Part shown: positions 1,358-52,779 of the stretch, in pieces | Numbering within the stretch: position 1 is the first letter of the stretch | Layout: the number at the start of each line of letters is the position of its first letter | The notes under the pieces: generated by a model | What the model was told of the DNA's origin: nothing | The model's input: only the letters and a program-made list of their open reading frames with translations | Databases searched by the model: none | Translations under genes and position numbers: made by a program | Source: Neoechinorhynchus agilis | Lineage: Eukaryota > Animalia > Acanthocephala | Length of the DNA: 64,000 nt | Direction: 5' to 3' | NCBI GenBank assembly: GCA_051530055.1 | Contig: CM121341.1 | Location: 7,046,784 to 7,110,783 of the forward strand

Positions 1358-1448
1358 ATCTAAAAATTCTATCCAAAACTCTGTTTTACTTGGAAAATTT
1401 AAAAATAGTCATTAATAAACGGCAGTATAAAGGGATGTGGACGCTTTC

Positions 1449-2506
1449 TAGAATATTTTGAACGTAGAAAACGAGTCCATTTTACTATTAGGATCGTTTT
1501 TAATTAGCTCCGACTTGGAATAGCCGGGTAAACCGAACAACAAACCATTATATGAATTTTTGGATAAGATGGAGACGTGACTAGAATATTTTGAACGTGG
1601 AAAACGAGTCCATTTTACTATTAGGATCGTTTTTAATTAGCTGCGACTTGGAATAGCCGGGTAAACCGAACAACAAACCATTATATGAATTTTTGGATAA
1701 GATGGAGACGTGACTAGAATATTTTGAACGTGGAAAACGAGTCCATTTTACTATTAGGATCGTTTTTAATTAGCTCCGACTTGGAATAGCCGGGTAAACC
1801 GAACAACAAACCATTATATGAATTTTTGGATAAGATGGAGACGTGACTAGAATATTTTGAACGTGGAAAACGAGTCCATTTACTATTAGGATCGTTTTTA
1901 TTAGCTCGACTGAATAGCCGGGAAACCGAACAACAAACCATTATATGAATTTTTGGATAAGATGGAGACGTGACTAGAATATTTTGAACGTGGAAAACGA
2001 GTCCATTTTACTATTAGGATCGTTTTTAATTAGCTCCGACTTGGAATAGCCGGGTAAACCGAACAACAAACCATTATATGAATTTTTGGATAAGATGGAG
2101 ACGTGACTAGAATATTTTGAACGTGGAAAACGAGTCCATTTTACTATTAGGATCGTTTTTAATTAGCTCCGACTTGGAATAGCCGGGTAAACCGAACAAC
2201 AAACCATTATATGAATTTTTGGATAAGATGGAGACGTGACTAGAATATTTTGAACGTGGAAAACGAGTCCATTTTACTATTAGGATCGTTTTTAATTAGC
2301 TCCGACTTGGAATAGCCGGGTAAACCGAACAACAAACCATTATATGAATTTTTGGATAAGATGGAGACGTGACTAGAATATTTTGAACGTGGAAAACGAG
2401 TCCATTTTACTATTAGGATCGTTTTTAATTAGCTCCGACTTGGAATAGCCGGGTAAACCGAACAACGAACCATTATATGAATTTTTGGATAAGATGGAGA
2501 CGTGAC
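1449..2506. repeat. Tandem array, 133-bp monomer, 8 copies
   Basis: tagaatattttgaacgt recurs at 1449, 1582, 1715, 1848, 1975, 2108, 2241 and 2374. Confidence 0.97.
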
Positions 2507-6698: not shown

Positions 6699-7847
6699 TG
6701 ACGTCAGTGGTTGTGCAGTGACGTTTCGGTGTACGTTCTTGGGACGGGTTTATTTTGTGGAGTGTTCAAAAAGAAACGGAGAGGCGTGACGAATTCAATT
6801 GGACGCAGTGACGTCAGTGGTTGTGCAGTGACGTTTCGGTGTGCGTTCTTGGGACGGGTTTGTGGAGTGTTCAAAGAAACGGAGAGGCGTGACGAATTCA
6901 ATTGGACGCGGTGACGTCAGTGATTGTACAGTGACGTTTCGGTGTACGTTCTTGGGAGGTTTATTTTGTGGGTGTTCAAAGAAACGGAGAGGCGTGACGA
7001 ATTCAATTGGACGCAGTGACGTCAGTGATTGTGCAGTGACGTTTCGGTGTACGTTCTTGGGACGGGTTTATTTTGTGGAGTGTTCAAAAAGAAACGGAGA
7101 GGCGTGACGAATTCAATTGGACGCAGTGACGTCAGTGATTGTACAGTGACGTTTCGGTGTACGTTCTTGGGACGGGTTTATTTTGTGGAGTGTTCAAAAA
7201 GAAACGGAGAGGCGTGACGAATTCAATTGGACGCGGTGACGTCAGTGATTGTACAGTGACGTTTCGGTGTACGTTCTTGGGACGGGTTTATTTTGTGGAG
7301 TGTTCAAAAAGAAACGGAGAGGCGTGACGAATTCAATTGGACGCAGTGACGTCAGTGGTTGTGCAGTGACGTTTCGGTGTGCGTTCTTGGGACGGGTTTA
7401 TTTTGTGGAGTGTTCAAAAAGAAACGGAGAGGCGTGACGAATTCAATTGGACGCGGTGACGTCAGTGATTGTACAGTGACGTTTCGGTGTACGTTCTTGG
7501 GACGGGTTTATTTTGTGGAGTGTTCAAAAAGAAACGGAGAGGCGTGACGAATTCAATTGGACGCAGTGACGTCAGTGATTGTACAGTGACGTTTCGGTGT
7601 ACGTTCTTGGGACGGGTTTATTTTGTGGAGTGTTCAAAAAGAAACGGAGAGGCGTGACGAATTCAATTGGACGCGGTGACGTCAGTGATTGTACAGTGAC
7701 GTTTCGGTGTACGTTCTTGGGACGGGTTTATTTTGTGGAGTGTTCAAAAAGAAACGGAGAGGCGTGACGAATTCAATTGGACGCAGTGACGTCAGTGATT
7801 GTACAGTGACGTTTCGGTGTACGTTCTTGGGACGGGTTTATTTTGTG
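6699..7847. repeat. Tandem array, 110-bp monomer, ~11 copies, each with a TGACGTCA palindrome
   Basis: TGACGTCA at 6699, 6809, 6912, 7017, 7127, 7237, 7347, 7457, 7567, 7677 and 7787. Confidence 0.97.
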
Positions 7848-7901
7848 TCATCGTGAAGTGGTGCAAGAATCGGTTTTCGATAGTTTTTGAATTTTTTTGC
7901 G

Positions 7902-7975
7902 TGCCCCAGGTGAGGCTCGAACTCACGACCTCCAGATTATGAGACTGGCGCTCTAACCAACTGAGCCACTGGGGC
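7902..7975 (-). tRNA. tRNA-Met (CAT), elongator type
   Basis: Cloverleaf: acceptor stem GCCCCAG/CTGGGGC, D arm GCTC/GAGC, anticodon loop CTCATAA, T arm GTGAG-TTCGAGC-CTCAC. Confidence 0.96.
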
Positions 7976-9558: not shown

Positions 9559-9920
<362 letters not shown>

Positions 9921-10693
9921 CACGTTTATTGGTTAGCTAGCAAAGAAAAGGACCCATGCATCTTTGGGTCCTCATTAAAACTCGGTTTCAGATTTGTTCA
10001 ATGAATGCGGCTGTTGACTTTGGAGTGGATTACGGTTTCGGTCGGGTTGGAAGGGTGCAGGAGAGCTTCAGTCTTTTCTCATATTCACAAGAAGATTTGG
10101 CAGTATGGAAAAAGGAGCGGAGCGAAGTTGTGGGAAGGATGAAATGAATCGGGATTACGAATGTGATTGAGATGATAATTCCACGATCTTTAAGAAAGAC
10201 TTCATGTACGGTTCATCGACAAGCAAAAATGGCTGTTATCACAAGAAAGTGTTAATGTGTCGCTACCGTATTCATCAATTATTCTAACAGCCCTTCAATG
10301 CGCTATTTTCTTGATCTTTTTTATAAGAGCACCGTGAAACAGTGGCCGATAGAGAACAGTCGCGATCAATCGTAGATTTTGGAGTTCAATAAACTAGATT
10401 CGTTCAACAATGTCTCATCGTTCGAAAGAGGTTTCATCGAAACTGCTCGTCGCGTTCTCGGATTTGAAACACAAACAAAACAAATTAAAAGCAATTTTTT
10501 AATATTTTACGGGATCGCAAAAGCGCAAAACAAAACGCTGAATAATTTTAACAAAAACGTTTTCCAAAACTCAGATCGCCGCTAGAATATATATATCGTT
10601 TTTTGTCGTTAATGTATAAAGATTTTTCATTTCACCAATGTACAGTGGTTGCTATAGAAACTGGTCTCGTAAATGAGTTGACTTTGTCTTTAA

Positions 10694-10897
10694 ATGTCAG
10701 TAGTCATCAAAATGAAACTCTACTGGGCATTTTTCATCTTAATCATCGCAATGAGCGTCCTGGCTGATTCGGTTGAAAGTGAGGACTTCAAACAAGAAAT
10801 GGAGGAATCAGAGAATGTTGAGCAGGCCAATAAAGTGGATCGGGCAAAGAGGGATAAAAAGTATGTTAAGCCAATAAGGTTTCTGTATGGTAAATAG
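10694..10897 (+). CDS. Secreted prepropeptide (neuropeptide, toxin or AMP-like); predicted mature peptide DKKYVKPIRFLY-amide
   Basis: Signal peptide MKLYWAFFILIIAMSVLA, acidic spacer, KR site, peptide, GK-stop amidation signal. AATAAA follows the stop directly. Confidence 0.85.
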   Translation: MSVVIKMKLYWAFFILIIAMSVLADSVESEDFKQEMEESENVEQANKVDRAKRDKKYVKPIRFLYGK

Positions 10898-11404
10898 AAT
10901 AAATACGAATCTCAGAGTTTGTGAGTTATGAGGCGTTTTTTTACAATATAAAACAAGAAACCTTATTCTCGGCTTTCAACGCCAAACTTCTTTCAAATGG
11001 TCGTAAAATGGACAACGAAATACATGATAAGATCAATAGTTAAATGTTACTGGCACGCTATTTTTGATTGAGGTTATTGAATCCTTTCCTCGGCTTTTGA
11101 AATAAGGCCACGGCATAGATCGGTGTGGCGCCATGATGATGCCAAAAGCTGAGGAAGAGATACAATAACCTGAATCAATAAGATTAATACTTTCATGCAT
11201 GATCATCGGCGACCGATACTTTTTTAAACGTTCTCTATATTTTTCGATAAAAAATTTACTAGGCAACTAATTTAAAATATGATGTTTATTCGTTCAATTC
11301 AGAACAGTTAAGTGATTAAGCGATTGGATTTAAAATCAGTGGATGGCGGTATTCTACAAATAAACTATATCGGAAAAAATGATTTAACAATTTTATACCG
11401 AATA

Positions 11405-12330
11405 AGCTCTGTGTTTTCCCGGAAATCTAAATTAGCCATCTAGTTTCTTACGATTTGATCTGAGCTCGACAAATACAATTAAGATTGCCGTATAGATTTT
11501 TACTTTATCATCATTATATTCTAGTTTGTCCATTACGCCCGGCTTATTTTTTTGGCATAAAGCAAAACCGATTACACCGGAGAAGTGATATAACCTCATA
11601 GCCTCTAATGCACGGTTAAAAGTTTGTTGATTCCTCCGGATTCTCAGATACCTCCCGAGGAGCCGGGACTCATCAGTGAGTTTCCTCCCTTCAACGAGAT
11701 ATTTCGTACCCTTTGTTTGTGCGTCATTGGCGGTAACGGATTCGAACGAGTTGATCCTTGAGTCCCGCTTCCTAATAAGATTAATTGTTTCATGAATGAT
11801 AATCGGCGACCGATAAACCTGTGTTGTCCAGAAAATCTAAATTAGCCATCTAGTTTCTTACGATTTGATCTGAGCTCGACAAATACAATTAAGATTGCCG
11901 TATAGATTTTTACTTTATCATCATTATGTTCTAGTTTGTCGATTACGCCCGGCTTATTTTTTTGGCATAAAGCAAAACCGATTACACCGGAGAAGTGATA
12001 TAACCTCATAGCCTCTAATGCACGGTTAAAAGTTTGTTGATTCCTCCGGATTCTCAGATACCTCCCGAGTAGCCGGGACTCATCAGTGAGTTTCCTCCCT
12101 TCAACGAGATATTTCGTACCCTTTGTTTGTGCGTCATTGGCGGTAACGGATTCGAACGAGTTGATCCTTGAGTCCCGCCTCCTAATAAGATTAATTGTTT
12201 CATGAATGATAATCGACGACCGATAAACCCTGTGTTTTCCAGAAAATCTAAATTGACCGCCTAGTTTCTTACGATTTGCTCTGAGCTCGACAAATACAAT
12301 TAAGACTGCCGTATAGATTTTAACCTTGTT
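11405..12330 (-). repeat. ~410-bp tandem repeat, ~2.2 copies
   Basis: ctagtttcttacgattt at 11440, 11850 and 12261. Confidence 0.9.
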
Positions 12331-13664: not shown

Positions 13665-13749
13665 CTAAATTTAAGATGACTTACATAAAGATTCGGATTT
13701 TTATACGAACAAAAAACGATATTGTAAAGCGACAGAATGTCGATCATCA

Positions 13750-15100
13750 TTATTAGTTGGTTAGTTATGAAAAGTGTCTTGGAGATTCTTATTCTTTAGA
13801 ATTTTTTAATCATCAAGAGAAAAATCATCGGGTCGCCGTGGATGGAAAAATCAATTAAAGATTTTTCAAATGATTGACTGGGCTTCCTTTTTTTGGAAAT
13901 ATCTCAATTTTTGAAGTGTGTTATTTAAAAGTCTTCTTAACCTTTTAAATAATTCTTTAAAAATAAAGACGTTCTTTGAACCTCGTCGAGAACTTCATGA
14001 TCATCAGTTTGGTTAGTTATTAAAAGTGTCTTGGAGATTCTTATTCTTTAGAATTTTTAATCATCAAGAGAAAAATCATTTGGGGTCGTCGTGGATGAAA
14101 AAATCAATTAAAGATTTTTCAAATTATTGATTAGGCTTCCTTTTTTGGAAATATCTCAATTTTTGAAGTGTGTTATTTAAGTCTTCTTAACCTTTTAAAT
14201 AATTCTTTAAAATTAAAGACGTTCTTTGAACCTCGTCGAGTTCATGATCATCAGTTGGTTAGTTATTAAAAGTGTCTTGGAGATTCTTTTCTTTAGAATT
14301 TTTAATCATCAAGAGAAAAATCATTTGGGGTCGCCGTGGATGAAAAAATCAATTAAAGTCTTTTTAGATGACTGATTAGACTGCCTTTTTTTTGGAAATA
14401 TCTCAATTTTTGAAGTGTGTTATTTAAAAGTCTTCTCAACCTTTTAAATAATTCTTTAAAATTAAAGACGTTCTTTGAACCCCGTCGAGAACTTCATGAT
14501 CATCAGTTGGTTAGTTATTAAAAGTGTCTTGGAGATTCTTATTCTTTAGAATTTTTTAATCATCAAGAGAAAAATCATCGGGTCGCCGTGGATGAAAAAT
14601 TAATTAAAGATTTTTCAAATGATTGACTGCCTTTTTTTGGAAATATCTCAATTTTTTAAGTGTGTTATTTAAGTCTTCTTAACCTTTTAAATAATTCTTT
14701 AAAAATAAAGACGTTCTTTGAACCTCGTCGAGAACTTCATGATCATCAGTTGGTTAGTTATTAAAAGTGTCTTGGAGATTCTTATTCTTTAGAATTTTTT
14801 AATCATCAAGAGAAAAATCATCGGGTCGCCGTGGATGGAAAAATTAATTAAAGATTTTTCAAATGATTGATTAGGCTTCCTTTTTTGGAAATATCTCAAT
14901 TTTTTAAGTGTGTTATTTAAGTCTTCTTAACCTTTTAAATAATTCTTTAAAAATAAAGACGTTCTTTGAACCTCGTCGAGAACTTCATGATCATCAGTTG
15001 GTTAGTTATTAAAAGTGTCTTGGAGATTCTTGTTCTTTAGAATTTTTAATCATCAAGAGAAAAATCATTTGGGGTCGCCGTGGATGAAAAAATCAATTAA
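13750..15100. repeat. Tandem array, ~248-bp monomer, ~5.4 copies
   Basis: ttggttagttat.aaaagtgtcttggagattc at 13757, 14009, 14255, 14507, 14750 and 14998. Confidence 0.95.
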
Positions 15101-15410
15101 AGCTTTCGGCGAACCTGATTCGGCAGCCTTTTTAAGGTTACCGAGCGAGTTCTTTTTTGGCATCGACAAGTCAAACTCGGTTACTCGCGTCCAATTTGAC
15201 AAACGAACGCTGAGAGGTCCGGAATGAAAGCGAATGGAAAAAATGGAAAATAAACCAGGAAAACAGTACGGGCCTAAGAAATATAGGAAAAAAGCGTCGT
15301 ATTCAGGCAAAATTAGTCCCTTGGCAAATGGCAGAATTCTAATAGCCGAAAGAACACCATCTACGATAATGTTCTTTCCGACTTAAATTCTAATGTTCGA
15401 GATGTCATGA

Positions 15411-16861
15411 CTACGTAATCCTTTTGCCGGATAAAACGTATTTTGATCCTTTAAAATATTTTTATCCGACAAGGGATTATGACCACCGCATTTCGAACTC
15501 TTGGACTATTATTCCAAAAGATTTTCTCTCTCTCTCTCGATGATTAATACTTTGTTTTGGAGATGGTGATCATAATCCTTTCCTCGGATAAAAATATTTT
15601 AAAGGATCAAAATGCTTTATCCGAGGAAAGGATTATGACAACCGCATTTCGAACTCTTGGACTATTATTCCAAAATTTTCTCTCTCTCGATGATTAATAC
15701 TTTGTTTTGGAGATGGTGATCATAATCCTTTCTCGATAAAAATATTTTAAAGGATCAAAATACGCTTTATCCGAGGAAAGGATTATGACCACCGCATTTC
15801 GAACTCTTGGACTATTATTCCAAAAGATTTTCTCTCTCTCGATGATTAATACTTTGTTTTGGAGATGGTGATCATAATCCTTTCCTCGGATAAAAATATT
15901 TTAAAGGATCAAAATACGCTTTATCCGAGGAAAGGATTATGACCACCGCATTTCGAACTCTTGGACTATTATTCCAAAAGATTTTCTCTCTCTCGATGAT
16001 TAATACTTTGTTTTGGAGATGGTGATCATAATCCTTTCCTCGGATAAAAATATTTTAAAGGATCAAAATACGCTTTATCCGAGGAAAGGATTATGACCAC
16101 CGCATTTCGAACTCTTGGACTATTATTCCAAAAGATTTTCTCTCTCCTCGATGATTAATACTTTGTTTTGGAGATGGTGATCATAATCCTTTCCTCGGAT
16201 AAAAATATTTTAAAGGATCAAAATACGCTTTATCCGAGGAAAGGATTATGACCACCGCATTTCGAACTCTTGGACTATTATTCCAAAAGATTTTCTCTCT
16301 CTCGATGATTAATACTTTTGGAGATGGTGATCATAATCCTTTCCTGGATAAAATATTTAAAGGACAAAATACGCTTTATCCGAGGAAAGGATTATGACCA
16401 CCGCATTTCGAACTCTTGGACTATTATTCCAAAAGATTTTCTCTCTCTCGATGATTAATACTTTGTTTTGGAGATGGTGATCATAATCCTTTCCTCGGAT
16501 AAAAATATTTTAAAGGATCAAAATACGCTTTATCCGAGGAAAGGATTATGACCACCGCATTTCGAACTCTTGGACTATTATTCCAAAAGATTTTCTCTCT
16601 CTCGATGATTAATACTTTGTTTTGGAGATGGTGATCATAATCCTTTCCTCGGATAAAAATATTTTAAAGGATCAAAATACGCTTTATCCGAGGAAAGGAT
16701 TATGACAACCGCATTTCGAACTCTTGGACTATTATTCCAAAAGATTTTCTCTCTCTCGATGATTAATACTTTGTTTTGGAGATGGTGATCATAATCCTTT
16801 CCTCGGATAAAAATATTTTAAAGGATCAAAATACGCTTTATCCGAGGAAAGGATTACGTAG
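15411..16861. repeat. Fold-back-like array: 9 copies of a 154-bp monomer, each with a 28-bp inverted repeat, bounded by ~60-bp terminal inverted repeats
   Basis: ggattatgac at 15474, 15630, 15780, 15934, 16088, 16243, 16389, 16543 and 16697. In-unit inverted repeat: ggtgatcataatcctttcctcggataaa / tttatccgaggaaaggattatgaccacc. Termini ctacgtaatcc (15411) and ggattacgtag (16851-16861). Confidence 0.92.
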
Positions 16862-21128: not shown

Positions 21129-21684
21129 TTCGTGTGGCGTGTGTGAGTTGTTTGAGTATGCAACCTCGTCGATCGCAGACTAGACAAAGTTTTCTAAAAA
21201 CAACAACACTGGTTTCAAACGTAAATCAAAGGTATATCCATACTGATTGGACTTATTGAAATCATGCGATTTGTTCTAAATGGTTTTCCAAACTATTGCG
21301 AAATATTAAACTTTTCGTTAATCAATGCCATTTTTTTGAAATATACAATTGTTGAGATTGGACCTGTAAAACCAGATTATACATTAGGTAATTTCAAATG
21401 CAATTGATTAATGTTACTAAAAATCGCTTAGTTAGAATTTAGCTGTCCAAATAAATTACGGAGTCGACAAAGTAGAATTTCTTTTTTTCAGTTTTGCCAT
21501 TAATTTTACCTTTTCATCTAGGTTTGTCATTGCTTCGCAAGTTTTGAAAGAAATCCAAGACCACAAAGTAGAATCTTGAAAACAGTACGATTTGATCAAA
21601 ATTGCAAAAGGCTTTTCAGCAACGTTGGAATTCACAACTCGGGGGTTGTTTCATTAAAATTGATTATGGCACAGTGCCACCTCC

Positions 21685-22853
21685 TTTTTCTATAGGTAAA
21701 AAATCAATCGGAAATCATCAGTGTGCTCGTGTTTATTAAAAGACATCTTTAAAAATCAAATTGAACGTTTATATGTCATTCTTTGGGATAAAAGCCTCTT
21801 TCCTCCGGTGAGAACCACTTTTTCTATAGGTAAAAAATCAATCGGAAATCACCAGTGTGCTCGTGTTTATTAAAAGATATTTAAAAATCAAATTGAACGT
21901 TTATATGTCATTCTTTGGGATAAAAGCCTTCCGCCGTGAGAACCACTTTTTCTATAGGTAAAAAATCAATCGGAAATCATCAGTGTGCTCGATAAAAGAC
22001 ACTTAAAATCAAATTGAACGTTTATATGTCATTCTTTGGGATAAAAGCCTCTTTCCTCCGGTGAGAACCACTTTTTCTATAGGTAAAAAATCAATCGGAA
22101 ATCATCAGTGTGCTCGTGTTTATTAAAAGATATTTAAAAAAAATCAAATTTAACGTTTATATGTCATTCTTTGGGATAAAAGCCTCTTTCCGCCGGTGAG
22201 AACCACTTTTTCTATAGGTAAAAAATCAATCGGAAATCACCAGTGTGCTCGTGTTTATTAAAAGATATTTAAAAAAAATCAAATTTAACGTTTATATGTC
22301 ATTCTTTGGGATAAAAGCCTCTTTCCTCCGGTGAGAACCACTTTTTCTATAGGTAAAAAATCAATCGGAAATCATCAGTGTGCTCGTGTTTATTAAAAGA
22401 TATTTAAAAAAAATCAAATTTAACGTTTATATGTCATTCTTTGGGATAAAAGCCTCTTTCCTCCGGTGAGAACCACTTTTTCTATAGGTAAAAAATCAAT
22501 CGGAAATCATCAGTGTGCTCGTGTTTATTAAAAGACATCTTTAAAAATCAAATTGAACGTTTATATGTCATTCTGGGATAAAAGCCTCTTTCCTCCGGTG
22601 AGAACCACTTTTTCTATAGGTAAAAAATCAATCGGAAATCACCAGTGTGCTCGTGTTTTTTTAAAGACATCTTTAAAAAATCAAATTGAACGTTTATATG
22701 TCATTCTTTGGGATAAAAGCCTCTTTCCGCCGGTGAGAACCACTTTTTCTATAGGTAAAAAATCAATCGGAAATCACCAGTGTGCTCGTGTTTATTAAAA
22801 GACATCTTTAAAAAAATCAAATTTAACGTTTATATGTCATTCTTTGGGATAAA
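21685..22853. repeat. Tandem array, ~135-bp monomer, ~8.7 copies
   Basis: tataggtaaaaaatcaatcgg at 21691, 21825, 21953, 22078, 22213, 22348, 22483, 22615 and 22750. Confidence 0.96.
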
Positions 22854-24539
22854 AACATCAAAATACTTTTGAAATTTTAGATGGTGCAATGGCGTTACAT
22901 GGTTAACGAAGTTCACTATTTGTGGTCATAGGGCTTTGAAATCTAAAGTAAAACGGGTTTGTTATTTGCGAATAAGGACAAGCGATCTTAAGTTATTAAA
23001 ATCAATCGTTCTGATCATTTAAGCAATTCTCAAAGTACTTGTTTTGTCGAGGATACCGCAGAGAAGGATCTTCGACAATCGATTGATACTCAGACGAATG
23101 CCCTTTCGACCATTACACCACCAAAACGGTAGCTGAATCTTTTTTTAAAGAAATTTCACATTTGTTCAAATTGGAAAAGCCACTAATTAGAACCAAAACG
23201 ATCGCGTGTTCTATTTGGTTAATTTGTGATTTTTCAATAGCGATAACGATGAACTCCGCAGTCGATCTGATGAAATGTGCCAATTATGGTATGCATTTTC
23301 GGATTCCTTCATCCTATTCTCAAAATGCAAGGGCACTGAAAAAGAAGGATCGATTTTTTCTTGAAGAATGTTTCATTCATTTAGATGGAATTAGATAAAA
23401 AGTTTTCAAGTCAAAAAAAGGTGATTGTTAAAGGTTTACTAATTCAAAAAAAATCTGATTTCCTCTAACGATATTTGCAAACTTCTAGTCAGCATTTAGG
23501 ATACGTTTTAAGCAGCAGCAGCGACTGCATATTATCTTTATGGACGGGCAGATATGTGTGACTGTAAGGTAAACACGAATTCCATTAGGGGAGTACCGCT
23601 ACTAATGGTTATGTAGAATCAGCGAGAGAGATATCATCTTTACAGTCTCCGAATTGTGGGGAAAAAGTGGACGAAGCGAATTGGTTAGAGCAATATTTCG
23701 TCTTCTACGTGAGACTTGGGACGTAAGTTCTCCGAAAAATTGAAGCATACCATTCATTAGTGAGTTTCGTCATGTTTTTAATTCATTGGAAATACATAAA
23801 CGTACTCATCGTCCATATATTCATTGAGCGAAAAACACTCGAGTTCGGATAAATGAAACTGGCTATTGATTTTGGAACCGTAAAGAAATTATTCATTATA
23901 GTTTCAGTTAGCGATGTTTGATTCAGAAATAGATTTATCTTGAAACCTTTCGGCCTTTTCGTTGACTTCAATTTTCGCAAGTTTTTTCAACTGTGAATGC
24001 GTCCTCGGAACTGATTTTGGAGTGGATTACGAGTCCGGCGTTGAATTGTTCATAAATAGGTTGTTTTCTGGCGCGAAGAAATCAAAATGATTTTAAAATC
24101 CGATATTTCGAAGACCTTGATAAAAAAGGCGTACAAGATTGTGCCTCCGAAAACAATCGGATTTTAAAAATAAAATCATTTTAATTTCTTCGCTCCAGAA
24201 AACAACCTAAAGCCATAAGCCACACTTACAAACAATTCTGGATAAGTCCCACGTAGAGGACGAAATACTAGAACTTAGTTCATAAATACGGATATTGTTT
24301 CTTTTGGTAGTTATAACTCGAGTCAAATGGTTCAAATTATAGCCGATGACGCAAACTATCTTAAAAGGGACGAAATACCTCGTTGAAGGAAAATGGAAAC
24401 TCACTGATGAGTACCAAACCCGTGTTCTGGGAATCCTTGTCGAACCCCCGAAGATGGCTTTATTTCCGTCCCTCAGTTTAAACAACCAATATAGATAGCT
24501 TCCAAAGTGTTTGTTCATGACTGTGAAAAATAAAAGAAA

Positions 24540-25297: not shown

Positions 25298-28124
25298 TTA
25301 ATCAAATTTAAAGTCGAGACCGACTAAATTCTGCCTACAAACCGAAGGTCCGTGTTCATCATATTCCGCTTTTGTATGATACGCCTTCCTGAACGATGGC
25401 TATTCATTTTTTTAAAAAAAGAAGAAGATTGAGCTCGATTCTATTCAGAGTCCGTAAAATGAAATTACCGTATTTGCATAAAGACTACCGCCGAACCAAG
25501 CAGCATATTTTTGCATTGGATGAGAGACGACTTTCACTTGGATCGGTTGCGGCTATTGCAATAGTTAGATTTGGTAATGCGAGCTCAAAAACGCCTTACC
25601 TTTAATGATAATCCGAGCGATTCTTGTTCACTTTGACGTCTATTTACGGCTACTTGAAGATCACGCCTTAGTCTTTTACCGAAATCCTTGAAGAGAGTTG
25701 ATCCACCTGACAGCACAATGTTCTACTCTATCGCTTTATAATAAACGAACATCACAGTGATCCGTCTCACTTTGTAGAGTCCTCGCTTGACATCCGTGGG
25801 ACAACTTTGGATCACCTCGTCAACAACCGTAGCTAGAGATTTGAGATATTCTCCATTAACGAATTCCGGATGAAAGAAAATTTCAGGCGCGAGAAACCGT
25901 TCGTAACCAATGTCTATAGTAAACTGCTGTTTGGTAACATTATTGACCGAATCGTATTGTCGCATGTACTTTTCAGGCTCACGATCGTAACGACCGAATT
26001 CAGTCATAATGTCAGGACAAACGTAACATAAAGATTCCTAGAAGCTAAAAAATTCGGGTTATTTCAAAAATGAGTTACCTTAACAGCTTTGGCTGTCTCG
26101 AGTGATTGCTCGGGCGGAACTAACGTTTCCCTTTCCCTAATAAGATTCTGAACGAAAGATGTTATATCTCTGCCTGATATCGGCATTCTCTTAATGCAGC
26201 TCCCTAAAACCCAGTCTCAAAAAAACAGTCCATTAAAATCAGAAGAAAACTAACCAATCACATATCCTTCAACTACTGGAACGACGTGAGTAACTCCGTC
26301 ACCACAATCAACCACCGTACCAGTGTATCCAGCAGGAGTTCCGCTAATGACTACATCATCATCACTACTGACCGTCTCGCCGTTTTTACGGGTTAACCAT
26401 GAAGCCAAGAGAGCGAGGATAGCTTGCTCGCCAATAAAAAGACCCGACACATTAAAGGTTTCGAACATTATCTCAGCCAGATTTTCTCTACTCTCCGGTC
26501 CACTTAAAGGAGACTCGGTCATTAGGAACAGGTAATCGTCCGGATCACACCGAAGATACTCGTACATGCAACGACCGAGATAGCGTTCCATCATGTCCCA
26601 GTCTTCGACTACTCCATGCCGAATGGGATATTTCATATTGTAATGATCATCCACGAAAAAAAGTGTCAAAATTTGATATTTGTGTGAAAATTTTTTTGCT
26701 AAAGCTCCCATAGGAAAGGCAATACATCTTTATATCCCTCAAAAATGCGAGTTGGCTACATTCTTTGTTGTTGTTGCTGCAGCGATTAACCATTCAAAAA
26801 AATCTCGGTTACAAATTCTGATTGGTCCGACGGCTTTAATTGTTTCAGTGAAGAGAGAGAGGTTAAAAAATGTAAATCGAGGTATTTGTATTTCTCCCTT
26901 TATTTCAGCGATGTCCTTCTGCAAACGGGTAAAAATCTATTTGAAAAAGGATATTTGCGGCCGGCATTTCGCATAAATCGATGGAACTTCAACAAGAAGT
27001 CATCATTAACAATTTCTCAGAGGTTAGAACATCTTTTTTGAGATGAAAGTTTTGTAATACGTCTAAGTGGTTCGTTGATTCCCGCGTAAAAAATGCGAGT
27101 TGACTACATTCTTTGTTGTTGTTGTTGCTGCAGCGATTAACCATTCAAAAAAAACTCGTTACAAATTCTGATTGGTCCGACGGCTTTAATTGTTTCAGTG
27201 AAGAGAGAGAGGTTAAAAAATGTAAATCGAGGTATTTGTATTTCTCCCTTTATTTCAGCATGTCCTTCTCAAACGGGTAAAAATCTATTTGAAAAAGGAT
27301 ATTTGCGGCCGGCATTTCGCATAAATCGATGGAACTTCAACAAGAAGTCATCATTAACAATTTCTCAGAGGTTAGAACATCTTTTTTGAGATGAAAGTTT
27401 GTAATACGTCTAAGTGGTTCGTTGATTCCCGCGTAAAAAATGCGAGTTGACTACATTCTTTGTTGTTGTTGCTGCGATTAACCATTCAAAAAAAATCTCG
27501 GTTACAAATTCTGATTGGTCCGACGGCTTTAATTGTCTCAGTGAAGAGAGAGAGGTTAAAAAAAGTAGATCGAGAAGGATCCACGCCTTTTTTCGGCGGT
27601 GTCCATTCTCTTTCTGGATGACTGATTCTCTGATACAAAAAATAGAGTTGGCTACATTCTTTGTTGTTGTTGCGATTAACCATTTTCAAAAAGCTCGTTG
27701 AAACATTCTGCGATGGTTGGAAGACATGATCAAACCCTAAGAAAAGACGATCATTGCGATTACAGTAACCTAAGAGATTGTTTTCAATGGTGGGGATGCA
27801 GATGGAACTAACCGGGTCTCTCGGTCAGGTCATCTCCAATAGTGAAATCAAGGTCTTCGAGCGCCATTAGTCCTGATTTTCTTGTAGTTCCCATCGGACT
27901 ATCCCTAACCAAAAGCGCTAAACGATTCTGAATTAGAAATGAGACACAAAACGGAGCTGACCTGTAGGAATAACGAAATTCGGTTCCATGTTTCCAGCAT
28001 ATCCAAGTTTTGTGAACCTGTAATTGAGGATCGGAAGGAAAAGCAAAAACCCGTTTTAAAAAACATCTAACCCACTTCCTAGATCAATAACTATTGGTGG
28101 CAGTTGGGCAGCCAATGGATCCAT
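25298..28124 (-). CDS. ACTR3: Actin-related protein 3, interrupted by an exonic insertion
   Basis: IVIDLGSG|[94 protein letters not shown] and [10 protein letters not shown]. All other introns are GT-AG. Confidence 0.95.
26644..27764. mobile_element. 1121-bp insertion with TG...CA termini and a 4-bp target-site duplication (GTAA), containing ~347-bp tandem repeats
   Basis: GTAA at 26640-26643 and 27765-27768. Removing the element plus one copy restores [14 protein letters not shown]. Internal repeat starts near 26741, 27088 and 27436. Confidence 0.75.
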
Positions 28125-32929: not shown

Positions 32930-34793
32930 AAGAGAGAGGTAAATCCGAGGGCAGAAGGTGATTTTTTCTTTGAAAAAGAAAAGCGAGAAATCGATCCGTG
33001 AAAATCAAAGATTGCTCGTGAGAGTTCGCCTTATAGAGGAAAAAGAGAGAAATTCTTATCGGAGGTCGCATTGAGTAACTTTTAGAATACTTCAATCATT
33101 TTGATGTGTTTTCTGTGGTTAAAAATAAGAACATTTCAAAAAAATCCACAAAAAAAGATATAAATCCGAGGGCAGAAGGTGATTTTTTCTTTGAAAAAGA
33201 AAAGCGAGAAATCGATCCGTGAAAATCAAAGATTGCTCGTGAGAGTTCGCCTTATAGAGGAAAAAGAGAGAAATTCTTATCGGAGGTCGCATTGAGTAAC
33301 TTTTAGAATACTTCAATCATTTTGATGTGTTTTCTGTGGTTAAAAATAAGAACATTTCAAAAAAATCCACAAAAAGAGGTAAATCCGAGGGCAGAAGGTG
33401 ATTTTTTTTGAAAAAGAAAGCGAGAAATCGATCCGTGAAAATCAAAGATTGCTCGTGAGAGTTCGCCTTATAGAGGAAAAAGAGAGAAATTCTTATCGGA
33501 GGTCGCATTGAGAACTTTTAGAATACTTCAATCATTTTGATGTGTTTTCTGTGGTTAAAAATAAGAACATTTCAAAAAATCCACAAAAAGAGGTAAATCC
33601 GAGGGCAGAAGGTGATTTTTTCTTTAAAAAGAAAAGCGAGAAATCGATCCGTGAAAATCAAAGATTGCTCGTGAGAGTTCGCCTTATAGAGGAAAAAGAG
33701 AGAAATTCTTATCGGAGGTCGCATTGAGTAACTTTTAGAATACTTCAATCATTTTGATGTGTTTTCTGTGGTTAAAAATAAGAACATTTCAAAAAAATCC
33801 ACAAAAAGAGGTAAATCCGAGGGCAGAAGGTGATTTTTTCTTTGAAAAAGAAAAGCGAGAAATCGATCCGTGAAAATCAAAGATTGCTCGTGAGAGTTCG
33901 CTTATGCTCGTGAGAGTTCGCCTTATAGAGGAAAAAGAGAGAAATTTATCGGAGGTCGCATTATAACTTTTAGAATACTTCAATCATTTTGATGTGTTTT
34001 CTGTGGTTAAAAATAAGAACATTTCAAAAAAATCCACAAAAAGAGATATAAATCCGAGGGCAGAAGGTGATTTTTTCTTTGAAAAAGAAAAGCGAGAAAT
34101 CGATCCGTGAAAATCAAAGATTGCTCGTGAGAGTTCGCCTTATAGAGGAAAAAGAGAGAAATTCTTATCGGAGGTCGCATTGAGTAACTTTTAGAATACT
34201 TCAATCATTTTGATGTGTTTTCTGTGGTTAAAAATAAGAACATTTCAAAAAAATCCACAAAAAGAGGTAAATCCGAGGGCAGAAGGTGATTTTTTCTTTG
34301 AAAAAGAAAAGCGAGAAATCGATCCGTGAAAATCAAAGATTGCTCGTGAGAGTTCGCCTTATAGAGGAAAAAGAGAGAAATTCTTATCGGAGGTCGCATT
34401 GAGTAACTTTTAGAATACTTCAATCATTTTGATGTGTTTTCTGTGGTTAAAAATAAGAACATTTCAAAAAAATCCACAAAAAGAGGTAAATCCGAGGGCA
34501 GAAGGTGATTTTTTCTTTGAAAAAGAAAAGCGAGAAATCGATCCGTGAAAATCAAAGATTGCTCGTGAGAGTTCGCCTTATAGAGGAAAAAGAGAGAAAT
34601 TCTTATCGGAGGTCGCATTGAGTAACTTTTAGAATACTTCAATCATTTTGATGTGTTTTCTGTGGTTAAAAATGAGAACATTTCAAAAAAATCCACAAAA
34701 AGAGGTAAATCCGAGGGAAGGCGATTTTTCTTTGAAAAAGAAAAGCGAGAACTCGATCCGTGAAAATCAAAGATTGCTCGTGAGAGTTCGTCT
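32930..34793. repeat. Tandem array, 219-bp monomer, ~8.5 copies
   Basis: aaatccgaggg at 32941, 33162, 33381, 33595, 33813, 34050, 34269, 34488 and 34707. Confidence 0.97.
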
Positions 34794-34863
34794 TAGGAAA
34801 AAGAAATTCTCAAACCTTGAAAAACATCCGAATGATTTTTAATATCTATTGATAGAGATTTTT

Positions 34864-35534: not shown

Positions 35535-37705
35535 AATAATCTCAAACCTTTTTTTTATTAAAGACAAAGAATTTAGCTTTTTTTTTAAATAATCTCAAAC
35601 CTTTTTTTCTTTGAAGACAAAGAGGTTTCGATTTTCTTTTAAAAACCTTTTTTTAAAGACAAAGAATTAGCGATTTTCTGTTTAAAATTCTCAAACTTTT
35701 TATTAAAGACAAGAATTAGCGGTTTCGATTTTCTTTTTCTTTTAGAAAATGATCTCAAACCTTTTTTTTTATTAAAGGCAAAGAATTTTGCGGTTTCGAT
35801 TTTCTGGTTTAAAAATATCTCAAACCTTTTTTCTTAAAGCAAAGAATTTAGCGGTTTGATTTTCTGGTTTAAAAATGATCTCAAACCTTTTTTTTGTTAA
35901 AGACAAAGAATTTAGCGGTTTGATTTTCTTTTATTTTAAAAAATGATCTCAAACCTTTTTTTCTTAAAGACAAAGAATTTAGCGGTTTCGATTTTCTTTT
36001 TCTTTTAGAAAATAATCTCAAACCTTTTTTTCTTTGAAGACAAAGAGGTTTCGATTTTCTGGTTTAAAAGTTAATCTCAAACCTTTTTTTTATTAAAGAC
36101 AAAGAATTTAGCTAAATAATCTCAAACCTTTTTTTTTTGAAGACAAAGAGGTTTCGATTTTCTGGTTTAAAAGTTAATCTCAAACCTTTTTTTTATTAAA
36201 GACAAAGAATTTAGCTTTTTTTTAAATAATCTCAAACCTTTTTTTCTTTGAAGACAAAGAGGTTTCGATTTTCTGGTTTAAAAGTTAATCTCAAACCTTT
36301 TTTTTATTAAAGACAAAGAATTTAGCTTTTTTTTAAATATCTCAAACCTTTTTTTTTTAAGCAAAGAGGTTTCGATTTTCTGTTTTAGAAAATAATCTCA
36401 AACCTTTTTTTATTATTAAAGGCAAAGAATTTTGCGGTTTCGATTTTCTTTTTCTTTTAGAAAATAATCTCAAACCTTCTTTTCTCAAAGACAAAGAATT
36501 TAGCGGTTTGGATTTTTTGGTTTAAAAGTTAATCTCAAACCTTTTTTTATTATTAAAGGCAAAGAATTGAACGGTTTCGATTTTCTTTTTCTTTTAGAAA
36601 ATAATCTCAAACCTTCTTTTCTCAAAGACAAAGAATTTAGCGGTTTCGATTTTCTGGTTTAAAAATGATCTCAAACCTTTTTTTTGTTAAAGACAAAGAA
36701 TTTAGCGGTTTCGATTTTCTGGTTTAAAAATTAATCTCAAACCTTTTTTTTTCTTAAAGACAAAGAATTTAGCGGTTTCGATTTTCTGGTTTAAAAATGA
36801 TCTCAAACCTTTTTTTTTGTTAAAGACAAAGAATTTAGCGGTTTCGATTTTCCTTTTATTTTAAAAAATGATCTCAAACCTTTTTTTCTTAAAGACAAAG
36901 AATTTAGCGGTTTCGATTTTCTTTTTCTTTTAGAAAATAATCTCAAACCTTTTTTTCTTTGAAGACAAAGAGGTTTCGATTTTCTGGTTTAAAAGTTAAT
37001 CTCAAACCTTTTTTTTATTAAAGACAAAGAATTTAGCTTTTTTTTAAATAATCTCAAACCTTTTTTTCTTTGAAGACAAAGAGGTTTCGATTTTCTGGTT
37101 TAAAAGTTAATCTCAAACCTTTTTTTATTAAAGACAAAGAATTTAGCGGTTTCGATTTTCTTTTTATTTTAGAAAATGATCTCAAACCTTTTTTTTAAAG
37201 GCAAAGAATTTTGCGGTTTCGATTTTCTTTTTCTTTTCAAAAATAATCTCAAACCTTTTTTTATTAAAGACAAAGAATTGAACGGTTTCGAGTTTCCTTT
37301 TCTTTTCAAAAATAATCGCAAACCTTCTTTTCTCAAAGACATAGAATTGAACGGTTTCGAGTTTCTTTTTTTCAAAAATAATCTCAAACCTTCTTTTTGT
37401 TAAAGGCAAAGAATTTTGCGGTTTCGATTTTCTTTTTCTTTTAGAAAATGATCTCAAACCTTCTTTTGTTAAAGACAAAGAATTTTGCGGTTTCGGTTTT
37501 CTGGTTTAAAAGTTAATCTCAAACCTTCTTTTCTTAAAGACAAAGAATTGAACGGTTTCGATTTTCTTTTTGTTTAAAAAAACCTTCTTTTCTTAAAGAC
37601 AAAGAATTTAGCGGTTTCGATTTTCTGGTTTAAAAATAATCTCAAACCTTTTTTTGTTAAAGACAAAGAATTTAGCGGGTTCGATTTTCTCTCGTTTTTG
37701 CTCAA
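35535..37705. repeat. Tandem array of ~40-60-bp T-rich variant monomers
   Basis: Recurrent aatctcaaaccttttttt..aaagacaaagaatttagcggtttcgattttct, with shortened variants. Confidence 0.95.
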
Positions 37706-38265: not shown

Positions 38266-41040
38266 CCATTAAACGCATTAATGAATTAAAATTCTTTTCT
38301 TCAAAAAAAAGCTTTCTAATTTTAAAAAACAACTGTTTCGCTATTTAATTTTAAGAGACGCAATGAAATCTCTTTTGAGAGGATAGAAATTATTTTATTA
38401 AAATCAATTCTTCAAAAGAGAAACCATCGCCGCATCTCATTTGACGAGACGATGCTTTGTCTATTTGTAAGAATTTATTTTAATAAAATATTTTCTATCC
38501 TTAAGATTATGATCTTCACATTTTCTCCATTAAACGCATTAATGAATTAAAATTCTTTTCTTCAGAAAAAAACTTTCTAATTTTAAAAAATACGACTGTT
38601 TCGCTATTTAATTTTAAGAGACGCAATGAAATCTCTTTTGAGAGGATAGAAATTATTTTATTAAAATCAATTCTTCAAAAGAGAAACCATCGCAGCATCT
38701 CATTTGACGAGACGATGCTTTGTCTATTTGTAAGAATTTATTTTAATAAAATATTTTCTATCCTTAAGATTATGATCTTCACATTTCTCCATTAAACGCA
38801 TTAATGAAATAAAAATTCTTTTGTTCAAAAAAAGCTTTCTAATTTAAAAAATACGACTGTTTCGCTATTTAATTTTAAGAGACGCAATGAAATCACTTTT
38901 GAGAGGATAGAAATTATTTTATTAAAATCAATTCTTCAAAACAGAAACCATCGCCGCATCTCATTTGACGAGACGATGCTTTGTCTATTTGTAAGAATTT
39001 ATTTTAATAAAATATTTTCTATCCTTAAGATTATGATCTTCACATTTTCTCCATTAAACGCATTAATGAATTAAAATTCTTTTCTTCAAAAAAAAGCTTT
39101 CTAATTTTAAAAATACGACTGTTTCGCTATTTAATTTTAAGAGACGCAATGAAATCACTTTTGAGAGGATAGAAATTATTTTATTAAAATCAATTCTTCA
39201 AAAGAGAAACCATCGCCGCATCTCATTTGACGAGACGATGCTTTGTCTATTTGTAAGAAATTATTTTAATAAAAATATTTCTATCCTTAAGATATGATCT
39301 TCACATTTTCTCCATTAAACGCATTAATGAATTAAAATTCTTTTCTTCAAAAAAAAAGCTTTCTAATTTTAAAAAAACGACTGTTTCGCTATTTAATTTT
39401 AAGAGACGCAATGAAATCTCTTTTGAGAGGATAGAAATTATTTTATTAAAATCAATTCTTCAAAAGAGAAACCATCGCCTTATCTCAAGTTTCTGAATTT
39501 GACGAGACGAAACTTTCTCTATTTGTAAGAATTTATTTTAATACCGCATTAATGAATTAAAATTCTTTTCTTCAAAAAACGCTTTCTAATTTTAAAAAAT
39601 ACGACTGTTTCGCTATTTAATTCTAAGAGACGCAATGAAATCCCTTTTGAGAGGATAGAAATTATTTTATTAAAATCAATTCTTCAAAAGAGAAACCACC
39701 GCCGCTTCTCATTTGACGAGACGATGCTTTGTCTATTTGTAAGAATTTATTTTAATAAAATATTTTCTATCCTTAAGATTATGAGCCTCACATTTTCTCC
39801 ATTAAACGCATTAATGAATTAAAATTCTTTTCTTCAAAAAAAAGCTTTCTAATTTAAAAAATACGACTGTTTCGCTATTTAATTTTAAGAGACGCAATGA
39901 AATCACTTTTGAGAGGATAGAAATTATTTTATTAAAATCAATTCTTCAAAAGAGAAACCATCGCCGCATCTCATTTGACGAGACGATGCTTTGTCTATTT
40001 GTAAGAATTTATTTTAATAAAATATTTTCTATCCTTAAGAATATGATCTTCACATTTTCTCCATTAAACGCATTAATGAATTAAAATTCTTTTGTTCAAA
40101 AAAAGCTTTCTAATTTAAAAAATACGACTGTTTCGCTATTTAATTTTAAGAGACGCAATGAAATCACTTTTGAGAGGATAGAAATTATTTTATTAAAATC
40201 AATTCTTCAAAAGAGAAACCATCGCAGCATCTCATTTGACGAGACGATGCTTTGTCTATTTGTAAGAATTTATTTTAATAAAATATTTTCTATCCTTAAG
40301 ATTATGATCTTCACATTTTCTCCATTAAACGCATTAATGAATTAAAATTCTTTTCTTCAGAAAAAAGCTTTCTAATTTTAAAAATACGACTGTTTCGCTA
40401 TTTAATTTTAAGAGACGCAATGAAATCACTTTTGAGAGGATAGAAATTATTTTATTAAAATCAATTCTTCAAAACAGAAACCATCGCCGCATCTCATTTG
40501 ACGAGACGATGCTTTGTCTATTTGTAAGAATTTATTTAATAAAATGTTTTCTATCCTTAAGATTATGATCTTCATTTTCTCCATTAAACGCATTAATGAA
40601 TTAAAAATTCTTTTCTTCAAAAAAAAGCTTTCTAATTTTAAAAATACGACTGTTTCGCTATTTAATTTTAAGAGACGCAATGAAATCTCTTTTGAGAGGA
40701 TAGAAATTATTTTATTAAAATCAATTCTTCAAAGAAACCATCGCCGCATCTCATTTGACGAGACGATGCTTTGTCTATTTGTAAGAATTTATTTTAATAA
40801 AATATTTTCTATCCTTAAGATTATGATCTTCACATTTTCTCCATTAAACGCATTAATGAATTAAAATTCTTTTCTTCAAAAAAAGCTTTCTAATTTTAAA
40901 ATTACGACTGTTTCGCTATTTAATTTTAAGAGACGCAATGAAATCTCTTTTGAGAGGATAGAAATTATTTTATTAAAATCAATTCTTCAAAAGAGAAACC
41001 ATCGCCTAATGTCAAGTTTCTGAATTTGATGAGACGATGC
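38266..41040. repeat. Tandem array, ~261-bp monomer, ~10.7 copies
   Basis: ccattaaacgcattaatg at 38266, 38527, 38789, 39051, 39312, 39799, 40061, 40322, 40581 and 40841. Confidence 0.97.
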
Positions 41041-45700: not shown

Positions 45701-46826
45701 ATTAGTTAAAATGAGAAAAAAACTCACTAATATTAAAAGAGTTTCACGATCTCCCAAGAAATTAGTTAAAATGCGAAAAGAGCTCTCTAATATTAAAAGA
45801 GTTTCACGATCTCCAAAGAAATTAGTTAAAATGAGAAAACTCACTAATATTAAAAGAGTTTTACGATCTCCAAAGAAATTAGTTAAAATGAGAAAAAAAC
45901 TCTCTAATATTAAAAGAGTTTCACGATCTCCCAAGAAATTAGTGAAAATGAGAAAAAAACTCTCTAATATTAAAAGAGTTTCACGATCTCCCAAGAAATT
46001 AGTTAAAATGAGAAAAACTCACTAATATTAAAAGAGTTTCACGATCTCCCAAGAATATAAAATGGAAAAATATTTGGTTTGTTGTAACTCTAATATTAAA
46101 AGAGTTTCACGATCTCCCAAGAAATTAGTTAAAATGCGAAAAGAGCTCTCTAATATTAAAAGAGTTTCACGATCTCCCAAGAAATTAGTTAAAATGAGAA
46201 AAGAGCTCTCTAATATTAAAAGAGTTTCACGATCTCCCAAGAAATTAGTTAAAATGAGAAAAAAACTCACTAATATTAAAAGTTTCACGATCTCCCAAGA
46301 AATTAGTTAAAATGCGAAAAGAGCTCTCTAATATTAAAAGAGTTTCACGATCTCCCAAGAAATTAGTTAAAATGAGAAAAGAGCTCTCTAATATTAAAAG
46401 AGTTTCACGATCTCCCAAGAAATTAGTTAAAATGCGAAAAGAGCTCTCTAATATTAAAAGAGTTTCACGATCTCCAAAGAAATTAGTTAAAATGAGAAAG
46501 CTCACTAATATTAAAAGAGTTTTACGATCTCCCAAGAAATTAGTTAAAATGGGAAAAGAGCTCGCTAATATTAAAAGAGTTTCACGATCTCCCAAGAAAT
46601 TAGTTAAAATGCGAAAAGAGCTCTCTAATATTAAAAGAGTTTCACGATCTCCCAAGAAATTAGTTAAAATGCGAAAAGAGCTCGCTAATATTAAAAGGGT
46701 TTCACGATCCAAGAAATTAGTTAAAATGCGAAAAGAGCTCGCTAATATTAAAAGAGTTTCACGATCTCCCAAGAAATTAGTTAAAATGCGAAAAGAGCTC
46801 GCTAATATTAAAAGGGTTTCACGATT
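42790..46826. repeat. Tandem array, 60-bp monomer (57-60-bp variants), ~67 copies
   Basis: ctctaatattaaaagagtttcacgatctcccaagaaattagttaaaatgagaaaaaaa repeated over ~4 kb. Confidence 0.98.
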
Positions 46827-51700: not shown

Positions 51701-52779
51701 ACCGAGCTTATTCGGTATAAAATTGTTAAATCATTTTTTCCGATATAGTTTATTTGTAGAATACCGCCATCCACTGATTTTAAATCCAATCGCTTAATCA
51801 CTTAACTGTTCTGAATTGAACGAATAAACATCATATTTTAAATTAATTGCGTAGTAAATTTTTTATCGAGAAATATAGAGAACGTTTAAAAAAGTATCGG
51901 TCGCCGATGATCATGCATGAAAGTATTAATCTTATTGATTCAGGTTATTGTATCTCTTCCTCAGCTTTTGGCATCATCATGGCGCCACACCGATCTATGC
52001 CGTGGCCTTATTTCAAAAGCCGAGGAAAGGATTCAATAACCTCAATCAAAAATAGCGTGCCAGTAACATTTAACTATTGATCTTATCATGTATTTCGTTG
52101 TCCATTTTACGACCATTTGAAAGAAGTTTGGCGTTGGAGGCCGAGAATAAAGTTTCTTGTTTTATTTTTTTATTGTAAAAAAACGCCTCATAACTCACAA
52201 ACTCTGAGATTCGCATTTATTCTACCTCCCATAAATGTGCCATTTGAATGGAGGAACATACTTTTTATCCCTCTTTGCCCGATCCACTTTATTGGCCTGC
52301 TCAACATTCTCTGATTCCTCCATTTCTTGTTTGAAGTCCTCACTTTCAACCGAATCAGCCAGGACGCTCATTGCCAAGATTAAGATGAAAAATGCCCAGT
52401 AGAGTTTCATTTTGATGACTACTGACATTTAAAGACAAAGTCAACTCATTTACGAGACCAGTTTCTATAGCAACCACTGTACATTGGTGAAATGAAAAAT
52501 CTTTATACATTAACGACAAAAAACGATATATATATTCTAGCGGCGATCTGAGTTTTGGAAAACGTTTTTGTTAAAATTATTCAGCGTTTTGTTTTGCGCT
52601 TTTGCGATCCCGTAAAATATTAAAAAATTGCTTTTAATTTGTTTTGTTTGTGTTTCAAATCCGAGAACGCGACGAGCAGTTTCGATGAAACCTCTTTCGA
52701 ACGATGAGACATTGTTGAACGAATCTAATTCATTGAACTCCAAAATCTACGATTGATCGCGGCTGTTTTTTATCGGCCA
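51700..52779 (-). repeat. Right arm (unique part) of the inverted segmental duplication of 10343-11420
   Basis: Near-identical reverse complement. ORFs at 51847, 52222 and 52537 duplicate those at 11033, 10694 and 10379. Confidence 0.92.
52222..52428 (-). CDS. Paralogous secreted prepropeptide; predicted mature peptide DKKYVPPFKWHIY-amide
   Basis: Same signal/acidic pro/KR layout as 10694-10897; ends with GR-stop followed by AATAAA. Confidence 0.85.
   Translation of the reverse strand: MSVVIKMKLYWAFFILILAMSVLADSVESEDFKQEMEESENVEQANKVDRAKRDKKYVPPFKWHIYGR

Follow-up and report, generated by a model that had tools for sequence, protein, structure and literature searches.

Between conotoxin paralogues, the signal and pro region is conserved and divergence is strongly concentrated in the mature peptide, which is often amidated at its C terminus; temporins end in a Gly(-Lys) amidation signal. 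SIFamide, a further amidated peptide, immediately follows its signal peptide and has a C-terminal Phe-amide. At the level of DNA, conversion between inverted arms with retention of selected differences is known from sex-chromosome palindromes, as well as from tandem opsin genes. In frogs, precursors of the preprodermaseptin family consist of a signal peptide, an acidic spacer with a dibasic end, and a short cationic C-terminal peptide; among them, the N-terminal part changes little and the active peptide a great deal (PMC10049141). The annelid LYamide is derived from a pedal-peptide/orcokinin-type FDSIG precursor, the bryozoan homologue of which is 293 aa long and contains eight FDSIG-motif peptides (PMC4990251). 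Finally, short-range template switching makes inverted copies of nearby sequence that appear as mutation clusters (PMC5453318, PMC7954356). Its reported effects include changes to coding sequence (PMC8604942), with examples from the coding sequences of humans, great apes, and yeast (PMC5453318, PMC7954356, PMC8604942).

Here, we analyzed a 64-kb window, by which we mean the whole stretch of DNA under study, and found two small open reading frames (ORFs), A and B, which are most likely a new lineage-restricted pair of predicted amidated-peptide genes on a known type of architecture. Exact look-ups placed the window on the plus strand of CM121341.1 (19.4 Mb) in assembly GCA_051530055.1, where its position, calculated from the offsets of two loci, is approximately 7,046,784 to 7,110,783; the coordinates given below are those of the window itself. 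The DNA is eukaryotic and of animal origin, and its genes code for glutathione synthetase, a UBA2-type E1 subunit, Golgi alpha-mannosidase II, an E2 G1 enzyme, MVB12, NDUFA12, a U11-48K-type zinc-finger protein, NPC1, and a DZF-domain protein. Exons in the window are large, introns measure 45 to 57 nt, and the host genome is a compact animal genome. MVB12 shows at most 36 to 38% identity to anything outside the assembly, and UBE2G1 matches proteins from nematodes, molluscs, and mites at a similar 70 to 74% identity. Nearly every intergenic space is occupied by tandem arrays, which have periods of 60 to 415 nt and make up about one-third of the window (1448 to 2506, 6699 to 7847, 13744 to 15106, 15461 to 16856, 21684 to 22854, 26741 to 27574, 32935 to 34795, 36010 to 37697, 38266 to 41006, 42791 to 46825, and 49449 to 51194). 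One of them, with a 60-nt period (68 copies, 4 kb), shows a strong AT skew and contains long open frames on either strand. The array at 6699 to 7847 is a GC-richer one with a 110-nt period, and a tRNA-Met gene (CAT; 7901 to 7975, minus strand) lies just past its end.

ORF A is located on the plus strand at 10694 to 10897 (67 codons plus stop), and ORF B on the minus strand at 52222 to 52428 (68 codons plus stop, with an alternative start at 52410). We thus recovered the coordinates, strands, and translations (67 and 68 aa) reported in an initial annotation of this DNA. An in-frame TAA stands directly before the first ATG of ORF A. Translation of this ORF may instead begin at the ATG at 10712, which would give a product starting with MKLYW; an acceptor-like ...tgtcag at 10700 closely precedes this ATG, and if that site is used, the ATG at 10712 would be the first start of A. 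A T-rich stretch ending in AG is also found 0 to 3 nt before the start codons of several neighboring genes, at 35418, 42577, 47145, 31851, and 41153; together with the introns of 45 to 57 nt, these sites look like widespread spliced-leader trans-splicing. Unless the mRNA of A is trans-spliced, its putative 5′ untranslated region (UTR) contains two upstream ATGs. Further upstream, a TATAAA (10615 to 10620, plus strand), which is a consensus match only, lies 74 nt before the first ATG in a block that is 100% identical between the copies.

Both ORFs have a layout consistent with a small secretory propeptide, as the initial annotation had proposed; it includes a signal peptide, an acidic spacer, R-A-K-R and K-K, a terminal peptide, Gly-basic-stop, and AATAAA. 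The signal peptide of A was called from a hydrophobicity scan and the −3/−1 rule and comprises residues 1 to 24 (10694 to 10765, plus strand), with predicted cleavage after V-L-A. In the two copies, the hydrophobic core reaches 3.0 to 3.1 (mean Kyte-Doolittle, 10 residues), and Val at −3 and Ala at −1 are followed by Asp-Ser. The acidic spacer (10766 to 10861, plus strand) is identical in copy B, where, as in A, 29 residues ending with R-A-K-R, a predicted furin/prohormone-convertase type site, are followed by D-K-K. Downstream of D-K-K there remain 11 residues in A and 12 in B. In copy A, the predicted final peptide and its processing signal (10862 to 10894, plus strand) are made up of Y-V and K-P-I-R-F-L-Y-G-K, the latter encoded by a patch at 10868 to 10894; in copy B (52225 to 52260, minus strand), they are made up of Y-V and P-P-F-K-W-H-I-Y-G-R, encoded by the corresponding patch at 52254 to 52225. 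The tail ends with Tyr-Gly-Lys-stop in A and with Tyr-Gly-Arg-stop in B, and the statement that Tyr-Gly-basic-stop is kept in both copies is therefore correct. The stop codon is directly followed by AATAAA (10898 to 10903 in A, 52221 to 52216 in B) and then by a GT-rich stretch.

From this arrangement, the predicted products are YVKPIRFLY-amide for A and YVPPFKWHIY-amide for B, or DKK-extended forms of them. Both would be short, cationic, and aromatic-rich peptides with a Tyr-amide at the end, and they are predicted to be unlike each other; there is no cysteine in either product. A signal peptide, a basic cleavage site, and a terminal Gly plus a basic residue are all present, features which, as far as sequence can tell, would place A and B in the class of amidated secretory propeptides. 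In a crude scan over the 64 kb for ORFs with a signal-like N terminus and a Gly-Lys/Arg end, 2 were detected in the window, A and B themselves, versus 0 in 60 block-shuffled windows.

Searches for relatives of the two proteins were negative throughout. A protein word-index search yielded no candidate homologues, phmmer returned 0 hits for ORF A against 1.84 billion representatives, and of the 263 stretches matched in a back-translated scan of metagenome contigs, none was confirmed. Pfam, searched with both proteins at E values up to 10, gave only four sub-threshold matches to unrelated families, and a PDB search gave nothing meaningful. ORF A, looked up exactly from either candidate start, was not on record, and among the gene calls surrounding copy B there is none at its position. 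The neighboring genes are among the gene calls of the assembly, from which peptide ORFs A and B are missing. Since the ORFs are missing from the gene calls, protein databases would miss their paralogues too, and the blank is weak evidence either way.

The two copies were compared in a gapped alignment of 10343 to 11487 with 52779 to 51626 (1,145 aligned nt), in which 29 substitutions and 2 indels were counted in total. Thirteen of the substitutions, along with a 3-nt indel, are concentrated in the patch at 10868 to 10894 (27 nt), that is, in the nine codons between Tyr-Val and the stop; codon-wise alignment gives 14 substitutions, in agreement with the roughly 14 substitutions plus 3-nt indel that had been noted for the last nine codons. 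The other 1,118 nt of the arm have 16 substitutions (1.4%). At this rate, 0.39 differences would be expected per 27 nt, and the probability of 13 or more is 1.8 × 10−17; even against a 10% background, the clustering has a P value of 5 × 10−7. The pattern of the A and B patches is real and far beyond chance. In the first 58 codons, by comparison, 2 nt differ (10745 and 10747), both in one signal-peptide codon (Ile to Leu), so that this figure of the initial annotation, together with the near-identity of the flanks, is borne out by the 1,145-nt alignment. Positions 10745 to 10747 form a second tiny multi-nucleotide cluster within 470 otherwise identical nt.

Patch A and patch B share 15 nt matches versus 14.6 ± 1.9 in shuffles (p = 0.52). 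Despite this shuffle-like nucleotide identity, the reading frame, Tyr-Gly-basic, an identical stop, and the AATAAA have survived in both copies. By a rough estimate, a random replacement would keep the frame, Tyr-Gly-basic, and the stop with a probability of about 10−4, and that two patches of unrelated nucleotides have done so is the strongest argument for a real gene. The variable residues pair conservatively (Ile/Phe, Arg/Lys, Phe/Trp, and Leu/Ile), a similarity that is weak by score (BLOSUM score 5; p = 0.12 against their own shuffles and 0.03 against random peptides). Two other accounts of the patch were considered and rejected. The first is a small in-place inversion: patch B has 16 matches to the reverse complement of patch A versus 15 to patch A itself. 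The second is a hidden splice donor at the stop (GT after the Gly codon region, in both copies), which was rejected because the codon phase of the candidate donors is not the same in A as in B and because AATAAA lies directly after the stop.

The two ORFs are contained in the arms of an inverted duplication, each with roughly 1.05 kb of unique sequence and, beyond it, a satellite of 410 to 415 nt. Arm A (10343 to 12327, plus strand) has its unique part at 10343 to 11396 and then 2.3 copies of a 410-nt tandem unit (11397 to 12321). Arm B (49449 to 52779, minus strand) has its unique part at 52779 to 51717 and then a longer array of a 415-nt version of the arm A unit, for which TRF gives 4.3 copies in 49449 to 51194, with further related copies extending to about 51716. 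The arms are some 37 to 40 kb apart. Arm A is preceded, at a distance of roughly 430 nt, by a perfect (AAT) microsatellite (9559 to 9917, about 120 units, 100% matches). Both arms contain a foldback of 115 nt and about 38 bp (11064 to 11178 in arm A, 51935 to 52049 in arm B; z = −6.3), which may be the remnant of a repeat element of a foldback or MITE-like family. Its arm motif recurs as inverted pairs within the 154-nt array at 15461 to 16856. The foldback is immediately followed by a motif of some 45 nt (11174 to 11220), which recurs at the end of every 410-nt unit (for example, at 11774 to 11815 and 12184 to 12225), and the satellite may have grown from the unique part of the arm.

Repeat-element features of this kind, the foldback and the terminal satellite, are what would be expected if the pair did not work at all, either as a chance or decaying frame in a duplicated repeat element or as two alleles, one of the arms being artefactual. 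The absence of a detected homologue and of annotation for the ORFs fits such an account as well, as does the fact that one-third of the window consists of tandem repeats, which are hard to assemble. Against it, homology between the arms stops sharply at all four ends, and the neighboring unique sequence is different at each of them; decayed homology past the ends was looked for and ruled out, with none found beyond any of the four. Different unique flanks and the unequal satellite copy number argue against a simple assembly duplicate, and the two arms are inverted around 37 kb of ordinary genes. Nor does a non-working frame sit well with the joint occurrence of a signal peptide, RAKR, KK, and Gly-basic-stop, for which the 60 shuffled windows gave 0 such ORFs, or with the retention of frame and amidation motif in both rewritten patches. 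We regard this account as very improbable.

How the differences are distributed along the arms is more informative about the origin of the patch. They amount to 9.6% in the outer 52 nt, 0.4% at 10395 to 10867, 48% in the patch, 1.5% at 10895 to 11487, and 5 to 6% in the satellite part. The core (1.0%) differs significantly from the margins (5 to 10%; Fisher P = 5 × 10−4 to 1 × 10−5), with the caveat that satellite margins may evolve faster or be aligned out of register. Inside the core there is a non-homogenized island of 109 nt (10868 to 10976, plus strand), composed of the patch and 82 nt of 3′ flank. This flank has four substitutions (10905, 10962, 10974, and 10976) and an A6 indel, or about 5% difference, and zero differences are found in the 120 nt before the island and the 266 nt after it. 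A high-identity core, more diverged margins, and a small island fit gene conversion of an older duplication in which the peptide was spared, as would be expected if conversion tracts that ran across the peptide codons had been lost. Conversion sparing the ligand was among the mechanisms offered in the initial annotation, and it is this one that gains support from the identity profile of the arms; as the profile comes from only two sequences, without an outgroup, such conversion is inseparable from a recent duplication with uneven mutation. The patch itself is roughly tenfold more diverged than the noncoding part of the island, and since it is saturated far beyond that 5%, time alone is insufficient to account for it. 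Because the flanking noncoding DNA is as conserved as the prepro region, prepro conservation gives no evidence of purifying selection, and the combination of a conserved prepro region with a variable peptide does not, at this locus, itself indicate a toxin-like selective regime.

One compact and sharp-edged island (10868 to 10976) is also what a diverged donor tract would leave behind. In such a cassette-like exchange, A and B would belong to a larger family with common flanks but differing peptide codons, and one of the two copies would have received its patch, and perhaps the entire 109-nt island, by short-tract conversion from a third member elsewhere in the genome; as the ORFs are unannotated, further members would be invisible to protein searches. 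Within the 64-kb window, however, blastn and tblastn searches for further paralogues, a third copy, or a patch donor found only A and B, the two copies already annotated, and each patch proved to be unique in the window with 3 mismatches allowed. With a donor of either patch absent from the window and relatives absent from the databases searched, we consider an exchange of this type distinctly unlikely.

A k-mer check for donors did reveal an inverted-repeat partner of patch A in its own 3′ flank, at 10956 to 10975 (plus strand), which consists of a 12-mer and a 5-mer separated by a 3-nt bulge (10968 to 10970). The segment at 10956 to 10967 is the exact reverse complement of 10873 to 10884, and that at 10971 to 10975 is the exact reverse complement of 10868 to 10872. 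This match, which is present in copy A only, is post hoc, needs the 3-nt gap, and spans the first 17 of the 27 nt of patch A, leaving the last 10 uncovered; the partner lies 62 to 108 nt downstream. Compared with shuffles, the 12-mer alone has a P value of 3 × 10−4, and the duplex of patch A with its own flank reaches −21.8 kcal/mol versus −13.1 ± 2.3 (P = 0.001), or −16.3 with the flank of copy B. The foldback at 11064 to 11178 aside, patch A and its partner form the strongest local inverted repeat of arm A. Moreover, all A/B differences within 10950 to 10980 (10962, 10974, and 10976) are situated in the partner, and the B states each weaken the pairing. A copy-specific RNA hairpin between patch A and its partner would be an alternative meaning of the repeat, but a transcript terminated by the AATAAA at 10898 would not include the partner. 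Patch B is a quasi-palindrome (5 + 5 bp) with a minimum free energy (MFE) of −8.2 versus −3.7 ± 2.0 (P = 0.03), and its flanks hold no templating partner (P = 0.35).

The inverted copy in A hints at template switching, within the limits of a gapped, post hoc match over 17 of 27 nt. It also brings in a further account, in which the duplication is recent (about 1 to 1.5% throughout) and the patches were rewritten by one or a few complex events (short-range template switching or quasi-palindrome correction) in place of gradual substitution, without long-term conversion. Consistent with this are the two blocks in which the first 17 nt of patch A equal the reverse complement of 10956 to 10975 (P ~0.001), the quasi-palindrome of patch B, and the two prepro differences, which also form a cluster, in one codon; the mechanism as such is documented (PMC5453318, PMC8604942). 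The account nevertheless has to accept the gap in the match and an uncovered end of 10 nt, in which 3 positions are still different, and it lacks a templating partner for patch B in the flanks. The 5 to 10% divergence of the margins and the 5% divergence of the island flank are unexplained by it, and keeping Tyr-Gly-basic-stop over two independent events would still need selection. We therefore judge a recent duplication with complex mutation to be unlikely.

Taken together, the reading that we favor, and to which we would give an about even chance, is that A and B are a lineage-restricted, probably single-exon pair of paralogues coding for amidated prepropeptides, shaped by gene conversion that spared the peptide and by diversification of the patch. 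Each gene would be translated into a prepropeptide of about 61 to 68 aa, from which the signal peptide would be removed. Cleavage of the acidic spacer would follow at R-A-K-R, with a possible second cut at K-K; loss of the C-terminal basic residue would then expose the Gly, which would be converted to the amide. If expressed and processed in this manner, the two peptides may act as signals or in defense. The duplication would be older than the 1% divergence of the core suggests, as the margins are 5 to 10% diverged, and conversion between the arms would have homogenized a core of about 1.1 kb, noncoding DNA included. The 109-nt island would have escaped, most simply because conversion would overwrite one of two useful peptides. 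Within it, the patch of 27 to 30 nt would have to be the outcome of diversifying selection, of complex mutation, or of both, and in copy A, the inverted copy of the 3′ flank would point to a template-switch event. In its strongest form, the peptide end would have been written in one template-switch step from its own 3′ flank and then shielded from conversion between the arms, a speculative sequence of events that we regard as quite unlikely.

If the genes are expressed, they would provide a very clean two-copy case, in which the peptide has been exchanged against an identical background of promoter, signal peptide, spacer, processing sites, and 3′ end, and the system is small enough to list every nucleotide difference. 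With sequences of relatives, two ideas could be tested on it by sequence alone, namely, the homogenization of peptide genes by a conversion that is excluded from the peptide codons and the writing of a new peptide in one step by template switching. The latter, if true, would offer a mechanism, visible in the sequence, by which mature peptides become focally hypervariable and the prepro region stays conserved, a pattern that has long been noted in toxins and host-defense peptides without an agreed mutational cause. In addition, small genes of the A/B kind are absent from the gene calls of this assembly and hence from protein databases, and lineage-specific peptide repertoires are therefore probably undercounted.

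Comparison with the known systems places the pair closer to some of them in architecture than in sequence. A weak likeness to SIFamide had been suggested for copy B, which shares with that peptide the Pro-Pro-Phe start and, as predicted, an aromatic amidated end; this suggestion did not hold up, since the peptides of A and B are found at the extreme C terminus after a 29-residue acidic spacer and end in Tyr, and Pfam gave no match to the family. Copy A has the predicted Leu-Tyr-amide end of the annelid LYamide, but A and B are 67 to 68 aa long, carry a single C-terminal peptide, and lack the FDSIG motif. As for conotoxins and temporins, the likeness drawn in the initial annotation is upheld for the layout, more loosely in the case of conotoxins, and fails for sequence relationship and cysteine framework. 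Conotoxins have such a framework and are encoded by three exons, whereas A and B are each probably a single small exon with far shorter peptides and have no Pfam conotoxin match. With frog temporins and brevinins, A and B share the tripartite layout, in which the active peptide, a predicted one in A and B, is at the C terminus; they differ in that there is no sequence relationship (Pfam at E up to 10; phmmer, 0 hits) and in that the frog family has a vertebrate host. Furthermore, only two copies are known here, and since their noncoding flanks match the prepro region in conservation, the conservation reflects duplication or conversion rather than selection on the prepro region.

At the DNA level, patch A resembles template-switch clusters in that its substitutions and indel match an inverted copy within about 100 nt, but the match in copy A has a 3-nt gap and extends over 17 of the 27 nt, and both the event and its direction are conjectural. 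Like converted palindrome arms and opsin genes, the locus combines a near-identical core that includes noncoding DNA, more diverged margins, and a small, putatively functional segment that is different. The arms here are only about 2 to 3 kb, however, and in place of a few tuning sites, what has been retained is a contiguous and saturated block of 27 to 30 nt.
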